Shown here in pieces: positions 9,130 to 62,163 of a DNA stretch of 64,000 nt (its first letter is position 1; every line of letters begins with the position of its first letter). Both the position numbers and the translations under genes were made by a program. The notes beneath the pieces are model-generated. The model had not been told where the DNA came from and ran no database searches. It was given only the letters and a program-made list of their open reading frames with translations. Source of the DNA: Octopus vulgaris (Eukaryota); contig OX597817.1 in the NCBI GenBank assembly GCA_951406725.2, positions 153,698,001 to 153,762,000 on the forward strand. Direction: 5' to 3'.

Positions 9130-9480
9130 TAGAAGGATGCGTGGCGTTCGATCATATAATAATATAAATAATACATAAATATATGCAAATATATATATAC
9201 ATATATGTACATACCTACATATATATGTATATATACATGCATATATGGGTACAGGACATCAAAAAGACTTTGAACACAAGGAGAAACGAAAACATAAAAA
9301 CAGAAACATAGAAACGAACTTTTTTCGAACAACGAAAAAAACAGAGAAATGAGACATGCAACATAAAGAATATTCCCCTTCTTCAGTTGTCCCTGTTTCA
9401 TCTACTCTCCCTTTCGAAGGTAAGGACAAGACGCGACTTCGTTGAAAGAGTCCGTGTGTATATATATGTGTATATTCATA
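9130..9480 (-). mobile_element. Probable Penelope-like terminal-repeat fragment (family E)
   Basis: The minus strand has acaaCTGAAGAagggg..ttctttatgttgc...gttgttcgaaaaaa...tcctgtacccatatatgcat, homologous to 20765-20915. It lies adjacent to (GATA)n/(TA)n. Confidence 0.35.
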
Positions 9481-10269
9481 TACATATATCTGGTTTTCTT
9501 GATATAAATTACTACAGCTTTCTCATTCTCTCTCTGTCTCTCTCTCTCCCTCGTTTCCCCTCTCTCTTCTTCTGGGTAGTAAATATCTTAACCTCTCCTG
9601 TTTATTCATCCACTCCTTATAGGCAGCCATCTTCGACTGGAACTCTTTGATTACTTGTAAGTTTAGCAGTAAGATTTGACGCTCAAAAAAGGACAGAAAA
9701 AAATCTTTTCCACTGGAATATCTGCTCTCTTGTTTTAAATGTTTGAACTTATACAGCGACTGGAATATCTGTTCCCTTGTTTTAAATGTTCTTTACATTC
9801 AGTTCTCTACGTGCTGTTGACATGTGGGGGAAGGCGAAATTTATTCATATCAAATGTTGATTTTATCACTCACCTTTCTGTTAAATTTAGATAACGTCAA
9901 GATTTCTGATTGTTCTCGATAATTTGGTACCAAAAGCACAATTCGTTAAGATGATTATTCTAATAATAGCGGAAATGTTTCAGAATAATTTTATTTGGAG
10001 TAAACAGTCACAAACAGCATCCCTACTTAAACTGTCGACAATATAAAAGCTGCTGTTGACAGCAATATCTTGACGGTCATCTCTTAACAGGTCATGTAAT
10101 CACTCTCCTAAGTTTCAAGATATATGTAGCTCATGTAAATAGGGACATTATCTGCCGATCAGTTGTTAAAAGTGTTCAAAAAATCTAGATACACCATTTT
10201 TCATATGTGATATACCACTTTATATATTCTGTAATTTTTAATTGTATTGCTATGGAAACAGATATGTCT

Positions 10270-10785
10270 GATGCAACTTCCATCTAGACAGAAGCCGTAC
10301 TAAGTGTCACTTAGCAAGCAATTTTTCTGGGGTAAAGTAATCACAAGTTAGTAGTACTCCCACATCTGGGACGACACTAATTCTACTTACGAAATATTGA
10401 AGACAGCACCCGAAGAAAGACCACTCCACCAAATTCGACTGGTGGCCTTAAATCACTCGTCAGCACACTCCAACTTCTGTCCACTCGTTGGCTGTCTTCT
10501 CCCTGTATCTTTTCTATCTCAGCTACATTGACGTATGCTTCTTCGAAGCAGTTGGTCTTTCGCAACCTCTTCTCAGATACATTCGATTCTGTTGCCATCC
10601 CCTCATCTCACCATTCATACTATTACTCCCCATCTCCAGTTTCTGCATTAGTCACTACATCTTTCGTCTGCCCAGAACATCGCTTCTCTAACATTCTTTC
10701 TTCATATATTTTCCCTTCCGACATCATCTTCAAACTGTTTAAGAGTAAGATTAACTTGGTGGATCAGACTGAGCCTGGATGGTAA
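10270..10785 (+). mobile_element. Degenerate non-LTR retrotransposon (Jockey/CR1-superclade-like) ORF2 3' end
   Basis: Frameshifted translation gives YSHIWDDTNS..., LSTR(L)AVFSLYLFY..., SFVCPEHRFSNILSSYIFPSDIIFKLFKSKINL. This resembles the EYASHVWG / RRNVASLSIFYRY / SF.P....LWNSLP.SVFP..YNL..FKSRVN C-terminus of such LINEs. Confidence 0.5.
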
Positions 10786-10850
10786 GCGAAGACCGCTATA
10801 CAAAACGTTACTTATTCAAGTGAAAAATTAATGCCTAAAACTTGGGGAAA

Positions 10851-11320
10851 TATTGGGTTGCCCGGAAAGTTCGAGCTGATTTATGGTAGCTTACATTTCG
10901 ACTTATTTTAGAACATCGTTGAGTCCATAAAATAGGATTTGACTACACCTCCATTTAGAGTACAGTATAAGCTATCTTTTCGTGGAAGAAGGTTTATGTT
11001 CCTATAAGCTGTGTTAATTCTGTAACCCTTTAAAATGGAAGATAAGAAAGTTCATTTTCGGCACTTGATGCTTTGGGAACCAGACAAAAATTGCTGCAGC
11101 TCAGCTGGGATGTGTTACCCCACCCTCCATATTCACAAGATTGCCCCTTATTCAGGTCTCTGCAGAATAGTCTTAATGGTAAAAATTTCAATTCCTTGGA
11201 TGACGTAAAAAGATACCTTGATGAATTCTTTGCCATGAAAGCACCTCAATTCTGGGAAGAGGGTACTTTCAAAGATGGAGACGTATTGTGCAACAAAATG
11301 GAGAAATTTTGTGAAGGGAA
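10851..11320 (+). mobile_element. Internally deleted mariner transposon (transposase N- and C-terminal remnants)
   Basis: Left end tattgggttgcccggaaagttc; ATG at 11035 gives MEDKKVHFRHLMLWE. This is fused after a deletion and frameshift to TRQKLLQLSWDVLPHPPYSQD..LFRSLQNSLNGKNFNSLDDVKRYLDEFF, the mariner HPPYSPDLAPSD region with the APSDYH part lost. Confidence 0.85.
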
Positions 11321-11324
11321 GAAG

Positions 11325-11460
11325 TTGATTACATAGACCCTAGTACTTGATTGGTCCTTCTTTTATCGACCCTGGAAGGATGAACGGCATAGTCGTCCGT
11401 AAAAACGGACGAAATGCCACTAAGCATTTTGTCCGGTGTGCTTACAGCTCAGCCATCTCA
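11325..11460 (-). mobile_element. Decayed SINE family 3 fragment
   Basis: tttatcgaccctggaaggatgaa...gacgaaatgccactaagcattt matches the family-3 reverse complement. Confidence 0.55.
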
Positions 11461-59380: not shown

Positions 59381-59810
59381 GGCGTGACTTTGTGATAAAG
59401 AGCTTGCTTCCCAACCTCGTGATTTCGGGTTCAGTCCACGGCGTGACACCTTTGGCAAGTGTCTTCTGCTATAACTTCTCAACCGACCAATGTCTTTTCA
59501 GTGGATTTGGTAGACGAAAACTGAAAGACGCCGGTCGTATAAATGTGTGTGTGTGTGTGTGTGTGTGTGTATCTTCGTATCTATGTCTTTGTGTCTGTGT
59601 TTGTCCCCCGCCATAGCTTGACAACAGGTATTGATGTGGTTACGTTCTCTGATTTATCGATTCGGCAAAAGAATGAAATGAAATAGGCACCAGGCTTTAA
59701 TAAAGACTAAGTATTGGGGTGGATTCATTCGGCTAAAAACAAATATTCAAAACAGTACCCCAGCATAGCTGCAACATACTGACTCAAACATGTAAAGGAT
59801 GAAAAAAAAA
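59381..59810 (+). mobile_element. Diverged SINE family 1-related copy
   Basis: gggttcagtcc B box, gtagacgaaaactgaaaga, an internal (TG)n and a decayed tail. Confidence 0.7.
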
Positions 59811-60049
59811 GGCTAATATATATATATATATATATATATATATATATATATATATATATATATATATATATATATATATGACAAGTCGGGGTTAACCACA
59901 GTAAAGGTACTGTGGATACATAAGAGTAAAGTAATTTATTTTATAGAAGGAGCTTACAGGAAAGAACTGTTTCATCTGAATGAAACAGTTCTAGTCTGAG
60001 GGTATATATATATATATATATATATATATATATATATATATATATATAT

Positions 60050-61540
60050 GGGGAGAATTAACAAAAAAAAAGACGGAGACAGGTGGTGTAGACAACAAGC
60101 AGATGTATTAGTATAACGCTCAGGAAGTGAAAAAGCCTACGCTCTTCCACAGAAACAAGGAGAGAAAATAAAGAAAGTTTAGTGACTAGAGATCTATCAC
60201 GGAGAATGCCGGACTGAAGGGTCATACAGGAAAGCCAGGAAGAAGGGGAAATAATAAAGTATTGGTGATCCCAAAACGAAAGTGCGCGTGCGTGTATTTG
60301 AGAGTTTGTATGTGCGTGTGGAAAAGGGCTGGTGATCTTGACGTGTGCGTGTGCGTATGTGTAGGTGTGAAAATGTGGGTCTGGGAAGTGGTCAGTGCTG
60401 ATGCGTGCGTGGTGGTGTGTTGTGTGGTTAATGTGTTGTGTGGTGTGTGGTATGGTGTGAAGGTGTTGGGAGGTGGGAAGGCGAGAGTGGGGAAAGCAAT
60501 GGAGGTATGTGGGTTTGGTTGAGGGTGGGGGTAGAGGTGGAGTATGTGAGTAGAGGGGGGATGGGGTAGAGGTGGAGTATGTGCGAGTGGGTGTAAGGGA
60601 TTGGGTGGGGTGGGATGGGGAAGTATAGGGAAGATGGGGTGGGCTTATGAGTGAGGGGTGACGATAAAGGAGGAAGGAGAAGGTATGAAGAGAAGAGAGG
60701 AGAGTAGGAGTGAAGAGCAGAAGTAGGAGTCGGAGCAAGAGAGGAAAGGTTGGTGGGAGGATGTAGGTATGAGGGGGAGAGAGGCGAGGGGAGGAGGTTA
60801 GATGAAGAGGGGAGGAGAGTTGAGCCCATATGGTGGAAAGGAGCGAAGAGAAGATTAATCCTTGTTCACGGCGCAAACGGGAGTCCAGATGGCTTCTGTG
60901 GAAGGACAGTCCGAACACGGACAGGCGTTACAAAGAGTGACCGGCAGAGCGGAAATGGCGCGAGACCGGGGTGTCATTGCCGAGTCAGGTGTCTCGGAGG
61001 TGTTCCGCGAACCGGTCAACCAAGCGGCGTCCGTTTGCCCAACGTATAGAGAAGGGCAGAGAGAGCACGAGATGCAGTAGATGATATTGGTAGAAGTGCA
61101 GGTGAAGGAGTCAGTGATGTGATAGGGTCGATGATGGGTGTTGGTGAGGAGGGTGGTGTTGGAAAGGTAAGGGCAAGTGCGGCAGTGTGGGCGGAAGCAG
61201 GGGAATGATCCGGGTTGGGAGGCTGGGTTAGGGAAGAAGCTGTGGACCAAGAGGTCTCTTAGGTTGTGCGCTCGTTTGAAGGAGGGGAGGGGTCGGTTAG
61301 GGAAGATGTGCGAAGTAAAGAGGTCGGACTGGAGTCGCCGAAAGGCTCGGAGAATGGTACGCTGGAGAGGTAGGGTGGTGGGGTGGTAGGTAAGGGGAAA
61401 TGGGAGGCGGGAGACGGTGGGGCGGGTTCAAGGGGAGAGAACAGATGCTGGCAAGAGCGGTGTGGATAGTGGTGAGGGGATATCCGCGTAGGATGAAGTG
61501 GTGAGCCATGAGTTGAGACTGAGTCTCGACCTTAGGATTT
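60050..61540 (-). mobile_element. Penelope-like retroelement (5' truncated; RT thumb + GIY-YIG + family-A terminal repeat)
   Basis: Minus strand: AHHFILRGYP (RT thumb), PGSFPCFRPHCRTCP..FTCTSTNIIYCISCSLCPSLYVGQT (GIY-YIG with a Cys motif), then after a frameshift RFAEHLRD..VSRHF..GLSFH. The 3' end carries the family-A repeat with a broken hammerhead (CTGTGGA-A-GAGC-gtag-GC at 60152-60135). Confidence 0.9.
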
Positions 61541-61559
61541 ACTGTTTCTAAGTCTAGTA

Positions 61560-61735
61560 CTTACAAACAATAAGTTACGGGGATGTAAACATAGCAACAT
61601 CGGTTGTCAAGCGATGGTGGCGTGACAAACACAGACACAAACGTATAAATGTGTATGCGTGTGTTCCACACAGTGGGACTGAACCCGGAACTATGTGTTG
61701 GTTAGCTAGCTACTTACCACACAGCCACTCCTGCG
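61560..61735 (-). mobile_element. Diverged or internally deleted SINE family 1
   Basis: cacagtgggactgaacccggaac...cagccactcctgcg head. Confidence 0.75.
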
Positions 61736-62073
61736 TATATATATACATATACTTATGTATATATATATATATATATATATATATATATACATATGTACAT
61801 ATGTATATATATATATATATATATATATATGTGTGTGTGTGTGTGTGTGTGTGTGTATGTATGTATGTGTATATAGTAAATAAAAAAAACGAACACAAGA
61901 AAAAATAACAACGCGAGGACGTGGTACATGAAATATATGTATGTGTGTGAGTGTGTGTGTGTATATATATATATATATATATATATATCAATAATTAAGG
62001 GTAAAATCAATTAGTTATTAATTAATTTCACCAAGTAGTGTTCAGTATGTAAAAGGACCATTCAAGGCGTATT

Positions 62074-62163
62074 CAAAATATTACTTTATATAATTAAGGG
62101 CTCAGTAAAATTTTACTGAGCCCTCATTTTACTGAGCCCTTAATTATATAAAGTAATATTTTG
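62074..62163. repeat. Perfect 38-bp inverted repeat (fold-back) next to (TA)n
   Basis: 62074-62111 is the reverse complement of 62126-62163. The spacer is a partial extra copy of the arm. Confidence 0.9.

Follow-up and report, generated by a model that had tools for sequence, protein, structure and literature searches.

Hammerhead-type motifs near the 3' ends of probable Penelope-like elements in Octopus vulgaris, including a family with U at core position 6

The nine hammerhead-like sites in the 64,000-nucleotide stretch of Octopus vulgaris DNA analysed here (contig OX597817.1; hereafter the window) are very probably the 3' terminal (pseudo-LTR) regions of Penelope-like elements (PLEs), which, judged from the sequence, is the reading that best explains them jointly. 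The window elements are cut-down copies of several PLE families from at least three clades, and in every tail 40-190 nt separate the motif from the 3' end of the element (Table 1). A hammerhead-type motif near the 3' end of a PLE, together with insertion into (TA)n, is a known arrangement, except for the U at core position 6 (U6) of the commonest family, A, which is the single possibly new element here. Each of the nine sites lies where a preliminary description of the stretch had placed it, and its proposal that they are terminal repeats of PLEs is supported, for several clades, by ORF remnants beside A5 and B and by intact relatives of families A and D.

Table 1. Positions of the elements, motifs and flanking tracts within the window
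Feature	Position	Strand	Description
A1	14899..15129	-	5'-truncated family-A PLE tail; 91% identity to full-length element positions 2992-3220
A1 motif	15020-15057	-	H17 at 15025; core CUGUUGA + extra A, relaxed descriptor only
A1 3' end	14889-14915		(TA)n
A2	21573..21745	+	5'-truncated family-A tail; (TA)n on both sides; 96% identity to full-length
A2 motif	21585-21622	+	H17 at 21617
C insertion	22050..23374	-	Inverted, PLE-type; both ends in (TA)n
C one-sided extension	22050-22214
C main copy	22213-23147	-	Canonical-core hammerhead
C hammerhead	22413-22520	-	H17 at 22413; helix II about 85 nt; loose-stem descriptor match
C inverted arm	23148-23374	+	5'-truncated; begins inside helix II
B	30045..31410	+	Broken Penelope/Poseidon-like ORF, then 3' tail (six-frame reading)
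B minimal-hammerhead motif	31318-31363	+	H17 at 31358
A3	32898..33001	+	Old, decayed A-like tail; 78% identity to full-length element
A3 motif	32897-32929	+	C at position 6; GAAAC-GU part broken; mutated (GAAAUGUG)
A4	42525..42734	+	Young family-A tail; 98% identity to full-length element
A4 motif	42585-42622	+	H17 at 42617
A4 3' end	42719-42734		Meets (TA)n
D	49300..50184	.	Putative short deletion derivative of Hydra-clade PLE
D extension	49300-49419		Equals autonomous element's first ~120 nt
D inverted arm (D1)	49420-49604	-	Hammerhead 49448-49538, H17 at 49454
D main copy	49605-50184	+	Hammerhead D2 at 50066-50156, H17 at 50150
D flanks	49269-49297 and 50190 onwards		(TA)n
A5	60023..61527	-	Older 5'-truncated A-like PLE copy
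A5 motif remnant	60134-60155	-	GAAAC half lost
A5 ORF remnant	60653-61527	-	CX5CxxC linker + frameshifted GIY-YIG domain (six-frame reading)
A5 flanks	60003-60049 and 61736-61830		(TA)n

The nine sites far exceed chance expectation. A strict type-I descriptor (CUGANGA, helix II, GAAA, 2-bp helix III, H17, helix I) gave 3 matches in the window, i.e. D1, D2 and a spurious alternative parse at A3, versus 0.01 on average over 100 dinucleotide shuffles. Permitting stem mismatches picked up C at 22413-22516 on the minus strand (3 matches versus 0.06 by chance), and relaxing the core to CUGxxGA with one extra base gave 7 matches in the window versus 0.14 by chance; A2, A4 and B, like A1, fit this relaxed form only. 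The Rfam hammerhead models found nothing at gathering score in the whole window. Searched alone, D2 reached 18.4 bits over the full RF00163 model versus a cut-off of 34, and A2 and C, each searched alone, had no hammerhead match in Rfam. Canonical PLE-type hammerheads are present elsewhere in the genome, and 8 exceed the cut-off of Rfam.

The core of the C and D motifs is canonical. Their helix II is long and their helix III, of 2 bp, lies within a self-complementary stretch; sequence reading agrees with the earlier observation of such 2-bp helices, within ACGU, ACAGCUGU and ACGAUUGU (two G-U pairs). The statement that each family places a hammerhead in its terminal repeat holds for D1, D2 and C, but not for family A, in which U6 is family-wide, nor for the window copy of B, which is decayed although the majority core of its family is canonical. 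Nor are the families wholly unrelated, as had been supposed: A and B have the boxes and the minimal-hammerhead layout in common, in which helix I has 4-5 bp, a single A bulges out ahead of helix II and only ACGU stands in place of a closed helix III. As helix III is not closed, the active fold of these two motifs would be possible only as dimers. An extra nucleotide between A9 and helix II was reportedly described by De la Pena and Flores in 2001 (cited in PMC4209133) in the CChMVd (+) hammerhead, which resembles the one unpaired A between the 5'-box GA and helix II of A and B. This viroid ribozyme differs from them in being of type III, with a full helix III and A6.

Diagnostic motifs, rather than a tree, suggest that A is Neptune-like, B Penelope/Poseidon-like and D a member of the Hydra clade; C is unassigned. 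The GIY-YIG/RT ORF remnants reported earlier to be attached to A5 and B were recovered by six-frame reading and blastn/tblastn, A5 aligning to the intact family-A ORF at 79.5% (blastn) and 82-85% (tblastn). That ORF (862 aa, locus L076, outside the window) contains GIY-YIG, with RVT_1 at E 1.1e-7, above cut-off; two full-length family-A copies, 99.9% alike, have the open 862-codon RT and GIY-YIG frame. By motifs, A resembles Neptune (Arkhipova 2006, as presented in PMC8557442) in its RT, the CX5CxxC linker after it and a GIY-YIG domain with CCHH, as well as in microsatellite bias. Canonical hammerheads are stated to be universal in the Neptune and Penelope/Poseidon clades (PMC8557442), whereas no CUGANGA box occurs on the sense strand of the full-length, 3.25-kb element of family A. 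The B ORF contains the RT motif YVDD and a GIY-YIG domain with CCHH, without a Zn-finger linker, and is thus like Penelope/Poseidon, by motifs only, in the order of RT then GIY-YIG and in the absent linker (as presented in PMC8557442).

Family B is represented by 4,656 genomic candidates (83-90% identity), and its depth ends at 31410-31413. The window copy has C at core position 6, where the family majority is A (position 31326, 97%), and T at 31320 and 31322, where the majority is C (about 90%). The majority letters restore a CUGAUGA core and a C-G helix I; by its letters, the window copy is a dead one with a private A6-to-C core mutation.

D and its autonomous relative (982-aa ORF, locus L078, outside the window) agree with the Hydra clade (Craig et al. 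2021, PMC8557442), known from aquatic invertebrates including Mollusca, in RWK, DKT, the CxCX5C linker, an endonuclease with CxxC and CxH around conserved E and N and no CCHH, a canonical hammerhead and insertion into (TA)n. They differ from the published members in abundance (17,794 loose EN-domain candidates, many 98-100% identical) and in an ORF of ~980 aa with long N-rich low-complexity inserts. D itself has a 212-aa GIY-YIG ORF; D copies are 98-100% identical, with open frames reaching 984 aa, and the D ORF aligned to the family-A RT (E 9e-9). An assembly gap (51038-51137) lies ~850 nt to the right of the D2 tail and ~670 nt past the (TA)n that trails it, and touches no element; no matching frame on its right flank continues the LINE-type ORF whose C-terminal end occupies the left flank on the minus strand.

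No coding sequence of C was found within the window, where its insertion shares the architecture of other PLE families; genome-wide there are 1,631 candidates at 99% identity. The arms of C (226 nt, 99-100% complementary) and D (185 nt, 100% complementary) are perfect enough, and their many copies have junctions constant enough, to recall cut-and-paste DNA transposons or MITEs with long terminal inverted repeats, in which hammerhead-like strings would be incidental. We give this explanation very little credence, as the arms are outward-pointing 3' tails, that of C beginning within the ribozyme, and the first ~120 nt of the autonomous element at one end form a tail-to-head junction. Moreover, the autonomous relative has RT motifs and GIY-YIG and lacks a transposase, and PLEs are known to have opposite-strand pairs of minimal hammerheads at distances of 100-700 bp (PMC4209133).

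The PLE reading also agrees with the insertion sites. Adjacency to (TA)n, claimed previously, was confirmed for A1-A5, C and D, B having only a short (TA)4 as neighbour; targeting is likewise supported by 3' ends that run into (TA)n at at least 26 of 29 family-A loci and at all D loci, while (TA)n of at least 5 units makes up just 3.8% of the window. The insertions show variable 5' truncation points, inverted arms and a one-sided extension. By analogy with published PLEs, the GIY-YIG endonuclease would nick (TA)n DNA and the reverse transcriptase would copy the RNA from its 3' end, which would leave 5'-truncated copies, head-to-head inverted pairs and a one-sided extension. Families A, C and D are very young, with copies 98-100% identical and intact 862- and 982-aa ORFs elsewhere in the genome; A4, for instance, has 25 other genomic copies 100% identical over 189 nt. 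The suggestion that the system is partly still mobile is therefore well founded: some families are very likely mobile, considering copy identities in A, C and D and open ORFs in A and D.

Type-I hammerheads in non-autonomous repeats also occur in the non-LTR retrozymes of animals (Cervera and de la Pena 2020, PMC7229834), short same-strand tandem repeats of 150-450 bp that are expressed as circular RNAs and thought to depend on the machinery of PLEs or other retroelements. Were the octopus elements of this kind, same-strand tandem hammerheads would yield unit-length RNAs ligated into circles as transposition intermediates. Locus L074, outside the window, has two same-strand family-A motifs ~4.5 kb apart in a partial tandem, and animal retrozymes have been proposed to be PLE pseudo-LTR derivatives (bioRxiv 10.64898/2026.07.22.740005). 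However, the window contains neither short tandem arrays nor any same-strand pair of one family, the C and D pairs being opposite-strand, and a retrozyme-like nature seems improbable.

The claim of novelty made in the preliminary description was overstated. PMC4209133 already describes minimal hammerheads in PLE repeats that occur in opposite-strand pairs and form helix III only as dimers, PMC8557442 covers the Hydra clade, Mollusca included, as well as the targeting of (TA)n, and PMC13282606 reports active PLE families of Octopus vulgaris. Our literature search found no paper on cephalopod hammerheads, and none of the genomes named in the text of PMC4209133 is from a cephalopod. As far as that text describes them (Cervera and de la Pena 2014), metazoan minimal hammerheads are type-I motifs in PLE flanking repeats; their helix I has 4-5 bp and, for want of a closed helix III, they can fold as dimers only. 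Genomes contain thousands of them, mostly as single motifs in truncated copies. The octopus motifs are alike in terminal-repeat type-I topology, short helix I, a base left unpaired where helix II begins, dimer-only helix III, the prevalence of single motifs, the occurrence of opposite-strand pairs and copy numbers in the thousands; they differ in the helix II inserts of 54-85 nt in C and D and in the U6 of family A. The same text mentions U3-A8 covariation and "exceptional core changes", whose kind it does not specify.

U6 is a property of the family rather than of single copies. Matches to the family-A motif with at most 2 mismatches number 35,040 (reversed control: none); among exact-motif copies in the genome, 226 have A6 versus 18,107 with another base, and about 98-99% of these copies, more than 18,000 in all, have U at this invariant position. 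Position 6 in the first 100 exact rows is U in 98, C in 1 and G in 1; the same rows have U 43, A 24, C 23 and G 10 at N7; and A 73, U 26, G 1 and C 0 at H17. At the remaining positions of the core, helix II and the loop, variation does not exceed 4%, except for transitions of about 6-11% at three CpG sites. Across at least 6 subfamily haplotypes, high-frequency variation in the 35-nt motif is confined to N7 and H17. The hammerhead consensus leaves just these two positions free, so that, U6 notwithstanding, the motif seems to be under hammerhead-like constraint. Our reading is that it descends from a hammerhead and that selection still keeps it in master copies.

What is being kept is a separate matter, and the role of the hammerhead in PLE transposition is unsettled in the literature. 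The motif could be a working self-cleaving hammerhead, with U6 and the bulged A a tolerated natural variant acting as a dimer. The confinement of polymorphism to N7 and H17, the rarity of G17 and lack of C17 in the rows counted above, the intact helices and ACGU dimer interface, and the activity and abundance of the family fit such a view, although a non-catalytic fold would be expected to show the same pattern of constraint. On the other hand, A6 is regarded as invariant, and its substitution lowers cleavage at least 100-fold in mutagenesis studies. The motif is rejected by Rfam and by strict descriptors, and even canonical PLE minimal hammerheads are poor cleavers in vitro (PMC4209133). We consider a working ribozyme doubtful.

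There is about an even chance that the motif is a catalytically dead relic, either with another role for its fold or palindrome, for example in template dimerisation or 3'-end recognition by the reverse transcriptase, or merely young and undecayed. The prevalence of U6 and the low in vitro activity just cited would agree with this, and Naiad PLEs thrive without canonical hammerheads (PMC8557442). Mere youth is an unlikely reason: all four bases occur at N7, at 10-43%, yet none of 32 other positions has a common variant. The exact match of the variable sites to the two positions that the catalytic consensus leaves free speaks against a relic. In alignment, other blocks of the family-A tail downstream of the motif are conserved as well, which could mean that template recognition, not catalysis, is what is constrained. 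We lean towards a motif that probably cleaves little or not at all and is kept for folding, dimerisation or template recognition.

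The elements of a type I hammerhead follow a fixed order (helix I, CUGANGA, helix II, GAAA, A15.1 with a short helix III and U16.1, H17, helix I), and descriptors built on this order were used to search the window. The strict descriptor gave 3 matches, compared with a mean of 0.01 in 100 dinucleotide-preserving shuffles: D1 and D2, the two opposite-strand hammerheads of family D, and one spurious alternative parse at A3. When stem mismatches were permitted, the motif of family C was gained (3 matches vs 0.06 expected from shuffles), and A1, A2, A4 and B were matched only by the relaxed core CUGxxGA with one extra base (7 matches vs 0.14 in shuffles). 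All nine motif sites listed in the preliminary description are present in the window, and the observation is real and non-random. The accompanying view that the window copies of every family carry a hammerhead holds for C and D, which have the canonical core; those of A and B have the relaxed core only. The start coordinate given for the whole set did not survive, as no hammerhead-like motif was found at 9130-9400 under any descriptor applied. This stretch contains an A-rich repeat together with tracts of (TA)n and (GATA)n.

Coordinates of the family A, C and D features in the window
Feature	Position	Strand	Description
A1	14899-15129	minus	5'-truncated tail, 91% identity to the full-length element
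A2	21573-21745		5'-truncated tail, 96% identity
A3	32898-33001		older, decayed copy, 78% identity
A4	42525-42734		5'-truncated tail, 98% identity
A5	60023-61527	minus	older, decayed copy; C-terminal part of the ORF retained
C arms	22215-22440 and 23148-23374		99-100% complementary
C motif	22413-22516	minus	matched with stem mismatches permitted
D arms	49420-49604 and 50000-50184		100% complementary
D1	49448-49538	minus	matched by the strict descriptor
D2	50066-50156	plus	matched by the strict descriptor

In the Rfam analysis of the whole window no hammerhead reached the gathering score and the output was dominated by microsatellite look-alikes of miRNA models; kilobase-scale sub-stretches gave no hammerhead either. 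D2 was recovered only from a 121-nt query. Taken alone, it scored 18.4 bits against RF00163 (Hammerhead_1), below the gathering threshold of 34 bits, with all 45 model positions covered; helix II of the alignment is interrupted by 54 inserted nt, and the closing pairs are weak. As separate queries, A2 and C produced no hammerhead match (for C, no RF00163). Classical PLE-type hammerheads are present in the whole genome (2.8 Gb, 227 contigs, used for all genome-wide searches), with 8 above the Rfam cut-off and 59 with E up to 10, which are lower bounds, as 73 of ~263,000 loose candidates were scored. Helices I and II of A and C came out in minimum-free-energy folds of monomers and dimers, from which the full junction was absent.

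The organization typical of Penelope-like elements (PLEs), i.e. a single ORF combining a PLE-type reverse transcriptase (RT) with a GIY-YIG endonuclease (EN), was found in an 862-codon frame of family A and in a 982-aa ORF of a relative of family D, and ORF remnants lie beside A5 and B in the window. All elements and frames were read as assembled, with neither consensus building nor frame repair. Full-length A is represented by two 3.25-kb copies outside the window (loci L074 and L076), which are 99.9% alike and have (TA)n on their flanks. Their open frame contains RVT_1 (E 1.1e-7, above the cut-off), a C-X5-C-X2-C linker and GIY-YIG; in L076 the linker lies between the RT and a GIY-YIG domain with a CCHH-type C/H pattern. 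Judged from these motifs, A has the Neptune-type layout described in PMC8557442. It may instead belong to the Nematis clade, whose linker is related to this one but reduced.

Family A is young by the identity of its copies. Among the 40 copies scored of 893 candidates, 25 others are 100% identical to the 189-nt A tail, and the genomic copies differ in their 5' truncation points. Of 29 loci, at least 26 have (TA)n directly beyond the 3' end (CCCGTTATA). The common 5' end of the full-length copies begins within the open frame (L076:5121-5400), and no ATG precedes the earliest conserved PLE motif there. An upstream pseudo-LTR copy may supply the start codon. Across L076:5121-8370, 73-90% of the sampled 31-mers occur in sequencing runs of eight studies, which carry six coded organism labels; this implies that A is near-identical across several of the labelled organisms.

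The proposed insertion into (TA)n is borne out in the window, where A1-A5, C and D all adjoin tracts of at least 5 units, even though these (91 tracts) make up only 3.8% of its length; B adjoins only (TA)4. Copies of A and D elsewhere in the genome likewise adjoin (TA)n. For Hydra and Naiad elements such a bias is on record, and for the Neptune linker it has been suggested (PMC8557442).

D1 and D2 are of type I: helices I (6 bp) and II (7 bp or more) close directly on the CUGANGA and GAAA boxes, helix III is AC/GU with the pair A15.1-U16.1 and the loop GAUU, and H17 is A. In 30 other D loci, one of the tails meets (TA)n directly and the second is prolonged by an extension of ~120 nt, the same in each locus and present at one end only. 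This extension is the head of the autonomous element, over ~120 nt (L078:1-129 vs window 49291-49420 and L071:3394-3522), and the junction is therefore one of tail to head. The point at which the extension is cut before (TA)n is always about the same, and may mark the end of the RNA template.

The D copy of the window has been shortened by deletion. A longer form of 2.7 kb (L071) encodes an ORF of 212 aa, which matches GIY-YIG weakly, and the D EN domain has 17,794 loose candidates genome-wide, many of them 98-100% identical and located in open frames of up to 984 aa. The ORF of the autonomous relative (L078) contains RWK, PADKTG (DKT in place of DKG), YRDD and a CxCX5C linker, and aligns to the family A RT with an E value of 9e-9. 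Its C-terminal GIY-YIG EN is devoid of CCHH; a CxxC precedes the conserved E and a CxH follows the conserved N. The Hydra clade is characterized by RWK, DKT, CxCX5C, the lack of CCHH and CxxC/CxH around E and N; it carries canonical hammerheads, inserts into (TA)n and has been recorded from Mollusca (PMC8557442). D matches every diagnostic feature of this clade, to which it can be assigned by motifs alone.

The C motif is likewise of type I (CUGAAGA, GAAA, C17). Its helix II is long, with one mismatch, and in its helix I a U-U/U-U internal loop leaves 6 of 8 pairs. The motif was matched solely under the looser stem rule. The short arm of C looks like half a ribozyme because it starts within helix II, and an extension of ~165 nt reaches up to the (TA)n tract at 22019-22045. 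C has 1,631 candidates genome-wide, with copies that are 99% identical; no coding part was seen within the window. Two inverted copies of a SINE-like repeat (21857-22053 and 23361-23557; 86% complementary) lie on both sides of the C insertion. The tails of this repeat end in (TA)n, and repeats of the same type occur ahead of several A insertions elsewhere, so its tails may provide many (TA)n landing sites.

Pseudo-LTR arrangements were found in three of the families, as a partial tandem of A (L074) and as inverted arms in C and D. C and D are organized according to the PLE architecture of PMC8557442, in which an inverted 5'-truncated copy adjoins a longer one, with a one-sided extension and both tails pointing outward. 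Their motif pairs lie on opposite strands, as do those 100-700 bp apart mentioned for PLEs in PMC4209133. Non-LTR retrozymes, on the other hand, consist of short same-strand tandem repeats, each with a type I hammerhead, and are expressed as circular RNA (PMC7229834). No same-strand motif pair of any one family occurs in the window, which gives no support to the suggestion of a retrozyme-type system producing circular RNAs.

The motifs of A and B have a different shape: helix I is 4-5 bp long, a single unpaired A separates the GA of the 5' box from a perfect helix II of 4 bp, and GAAAC-GU is loopless. As there is no loop, helix III could be formed only between two molecules, via the ACGU palindrome. 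A short helix I, an unpaired base 5' of helix II and a dimer-only helix III are also features of the minimal hammerheads (min-HHRs) of PLE terminal repeats (PMC4209133). Other core registers for A and B (a second CUG as C3, C3U, A9G) were tested by hand and rejected, because the perfect 4-bp helix II beside GAAA was lost and helix I was left unpaired.

The B copy of the window has a stop-broken frame (30045-31230) with the RT motif YVDD, a C-terminal GIY-YIG with a CCHH pattern and no Zn-finger linker, by which B may be described as Penelope/Poseidon-like; its tail ends at 31410. The 4,656 genome-wide candidates are only 83-90% identical, which indicates an older family. For its majority letters, contigs of four sequencing runs were aligned to 31150-31460 at 80% likeness (~30,000 pieces in the largest run). 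At 31326 (position 6), where the window copy has C, 97% of the family depth has A, and the window copy also departs from the majority at 31320 (C, 91%), 31322 (C, 88%) and 31335 (G, 96%). The majority reads CAC-CUGAUGA-A-(helix II)-GAAAC-GU-U-GUG, with a canonical box and a C-G helix I. The motif thus comprises a helix I (G)ACAC/GUGU(U) in the majority, the bulged A, a helix II GGCU/AGCC and ACGU. The core CUGCUGA, previously ascribed to this family, is a private A6-to-C mutation of a dead copy, and the window B is a mutated member of a canonical-box family. About 30% C-to-T and G-to-A changes at 31355/31356 are ordinary CpG decay. A tRNA-like stretch (GGCGTAGTGGTTAAGAGCACGG...) was noted at 31185-31245, ~80 nt upstream of the motif, with high depth from B family copies.

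In family A the deviation is of another kind. The motif comprises a helix I UCUUU/AAAGA, a bulged A, a helix II GAGC/GCUC and ACGU, and every young copy has U6 where the min-HHR consensus CUGANGA requires A6. Neither CUGANGA nor a strict hammerhead occurs anywhere on the sense strand of full-length A. Exact motif counts over the whole genome gave A6 in 226 copies and another base, almost always U, in 18,107. With positions 6, 7 and 17 free and up to 2 mismatches allowed, the 35-nt motif had 35,040 genomic matches, and its reversed control had 0.

Variation was tallied per position in the first 100 exact matches listed, all from one contig. Position 6 was U in 98, C in 1 and G in 1; N7 was U in 43, A in 24, C in 23 and G in 10; and H17 was A in 73, U in 26, G in 1 and C in 0, with at least 6 N7/H17 combinations among these 100. 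When the remaining core positions were freed, they varied by at most 4% per site, except for 6-11% transitions at two CpGs, and freeing helix II with its loop gave scattered one-sided changes and CpG decay, with no common alternative. In the loci examined, diverged A-like copies have unlike flanks and motifs differing at N7 and H17 only. It seems that the sites varying between A subfamilies are only N7 and H17, the free positions of the consensus, with the forbidden G17 rare, as read by pattern matching, which conceals subfamilies with differences at fixed positions. This is the pattern expected of a hammerhead-like constraint on the fold, but with U6.

Constraint on the motif is no proof of catalysis. 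Changes of A6 reduce hammerhead cleavage at least 100-fold in mutagenesis studies, and for this reason we regard it as possible but rather doubtful that the ~35,000-copy motif is a naturally selected, catalytically competent U6 hammerhead with the bulged base usual in PLEs. A competent motif would work in dimeric form, within the RNA of a Neptune-like retrotransposon that is active at present. We give an even chance to the alternative that the motif is a non-cleaving fold, kept for some other step; further blocks of the A tail are conserved besides it.

Our data concern the element types, their coding capacity, youth and target, and the position and shape of the motifs; the life cycle can be sketched from published PLE biology. 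The GIY-YIG endonuclease would nick (TA)n, and reverse transcription would be primed from the 3' end of the RNA on both strands of the break, which would give rise to truncated and inverted copies. Two motifs would be present in a transcript spanning two pseudo-LTRs, and helix III pairing between them could serve to excise a unit. PMC8557442 and PMC4209133 call the role of PLE hammerheads unclear.

Active PLE families of Octopus vulgaris are already known, with 31 listed (PMC13282606), as are the PLE hammerheads, their minimal form and (TA)n targeting; no paper on hammerheads in cephalopods was found in the literature searched. The present case is thus mostly a textbook one, extended to a cephalopod: this genome abounds in young members of three PLE clades, including the recently named Hydra, with (TA)n as landing sites, a picture useful for repeat annotation. 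Family A goes beyond the textbook, as a highly successful, active PLE with a hammerhead-shaped motif that varies only at the free positions and is devoid of A6. Either the hammerhead core is more tolerant than thought, or the fold is retained for a non-cleavage role, and both outcomes bear directly on the function of hammerheads in PLEs.

An assembly gap (51038-51137) is located ~850 nt to the right of the D2 tail, beyond the following (TA)n, and no result for A-D depends on continuity across it. To its left (50790-51037, minus strand), the C-terminal end of a LINE-type ORF2 (ending ...DREVWRSMVNSIV...) heads into the gap; no matching frame was seen on the right flank. The 3' UTR of A (window 60300-60900; L076:7700-8100) contains long C/T-rich and (ACTAATACAT)-like low-complexity arrays, which account for the strong GC skew at 60001-62000 of the window.
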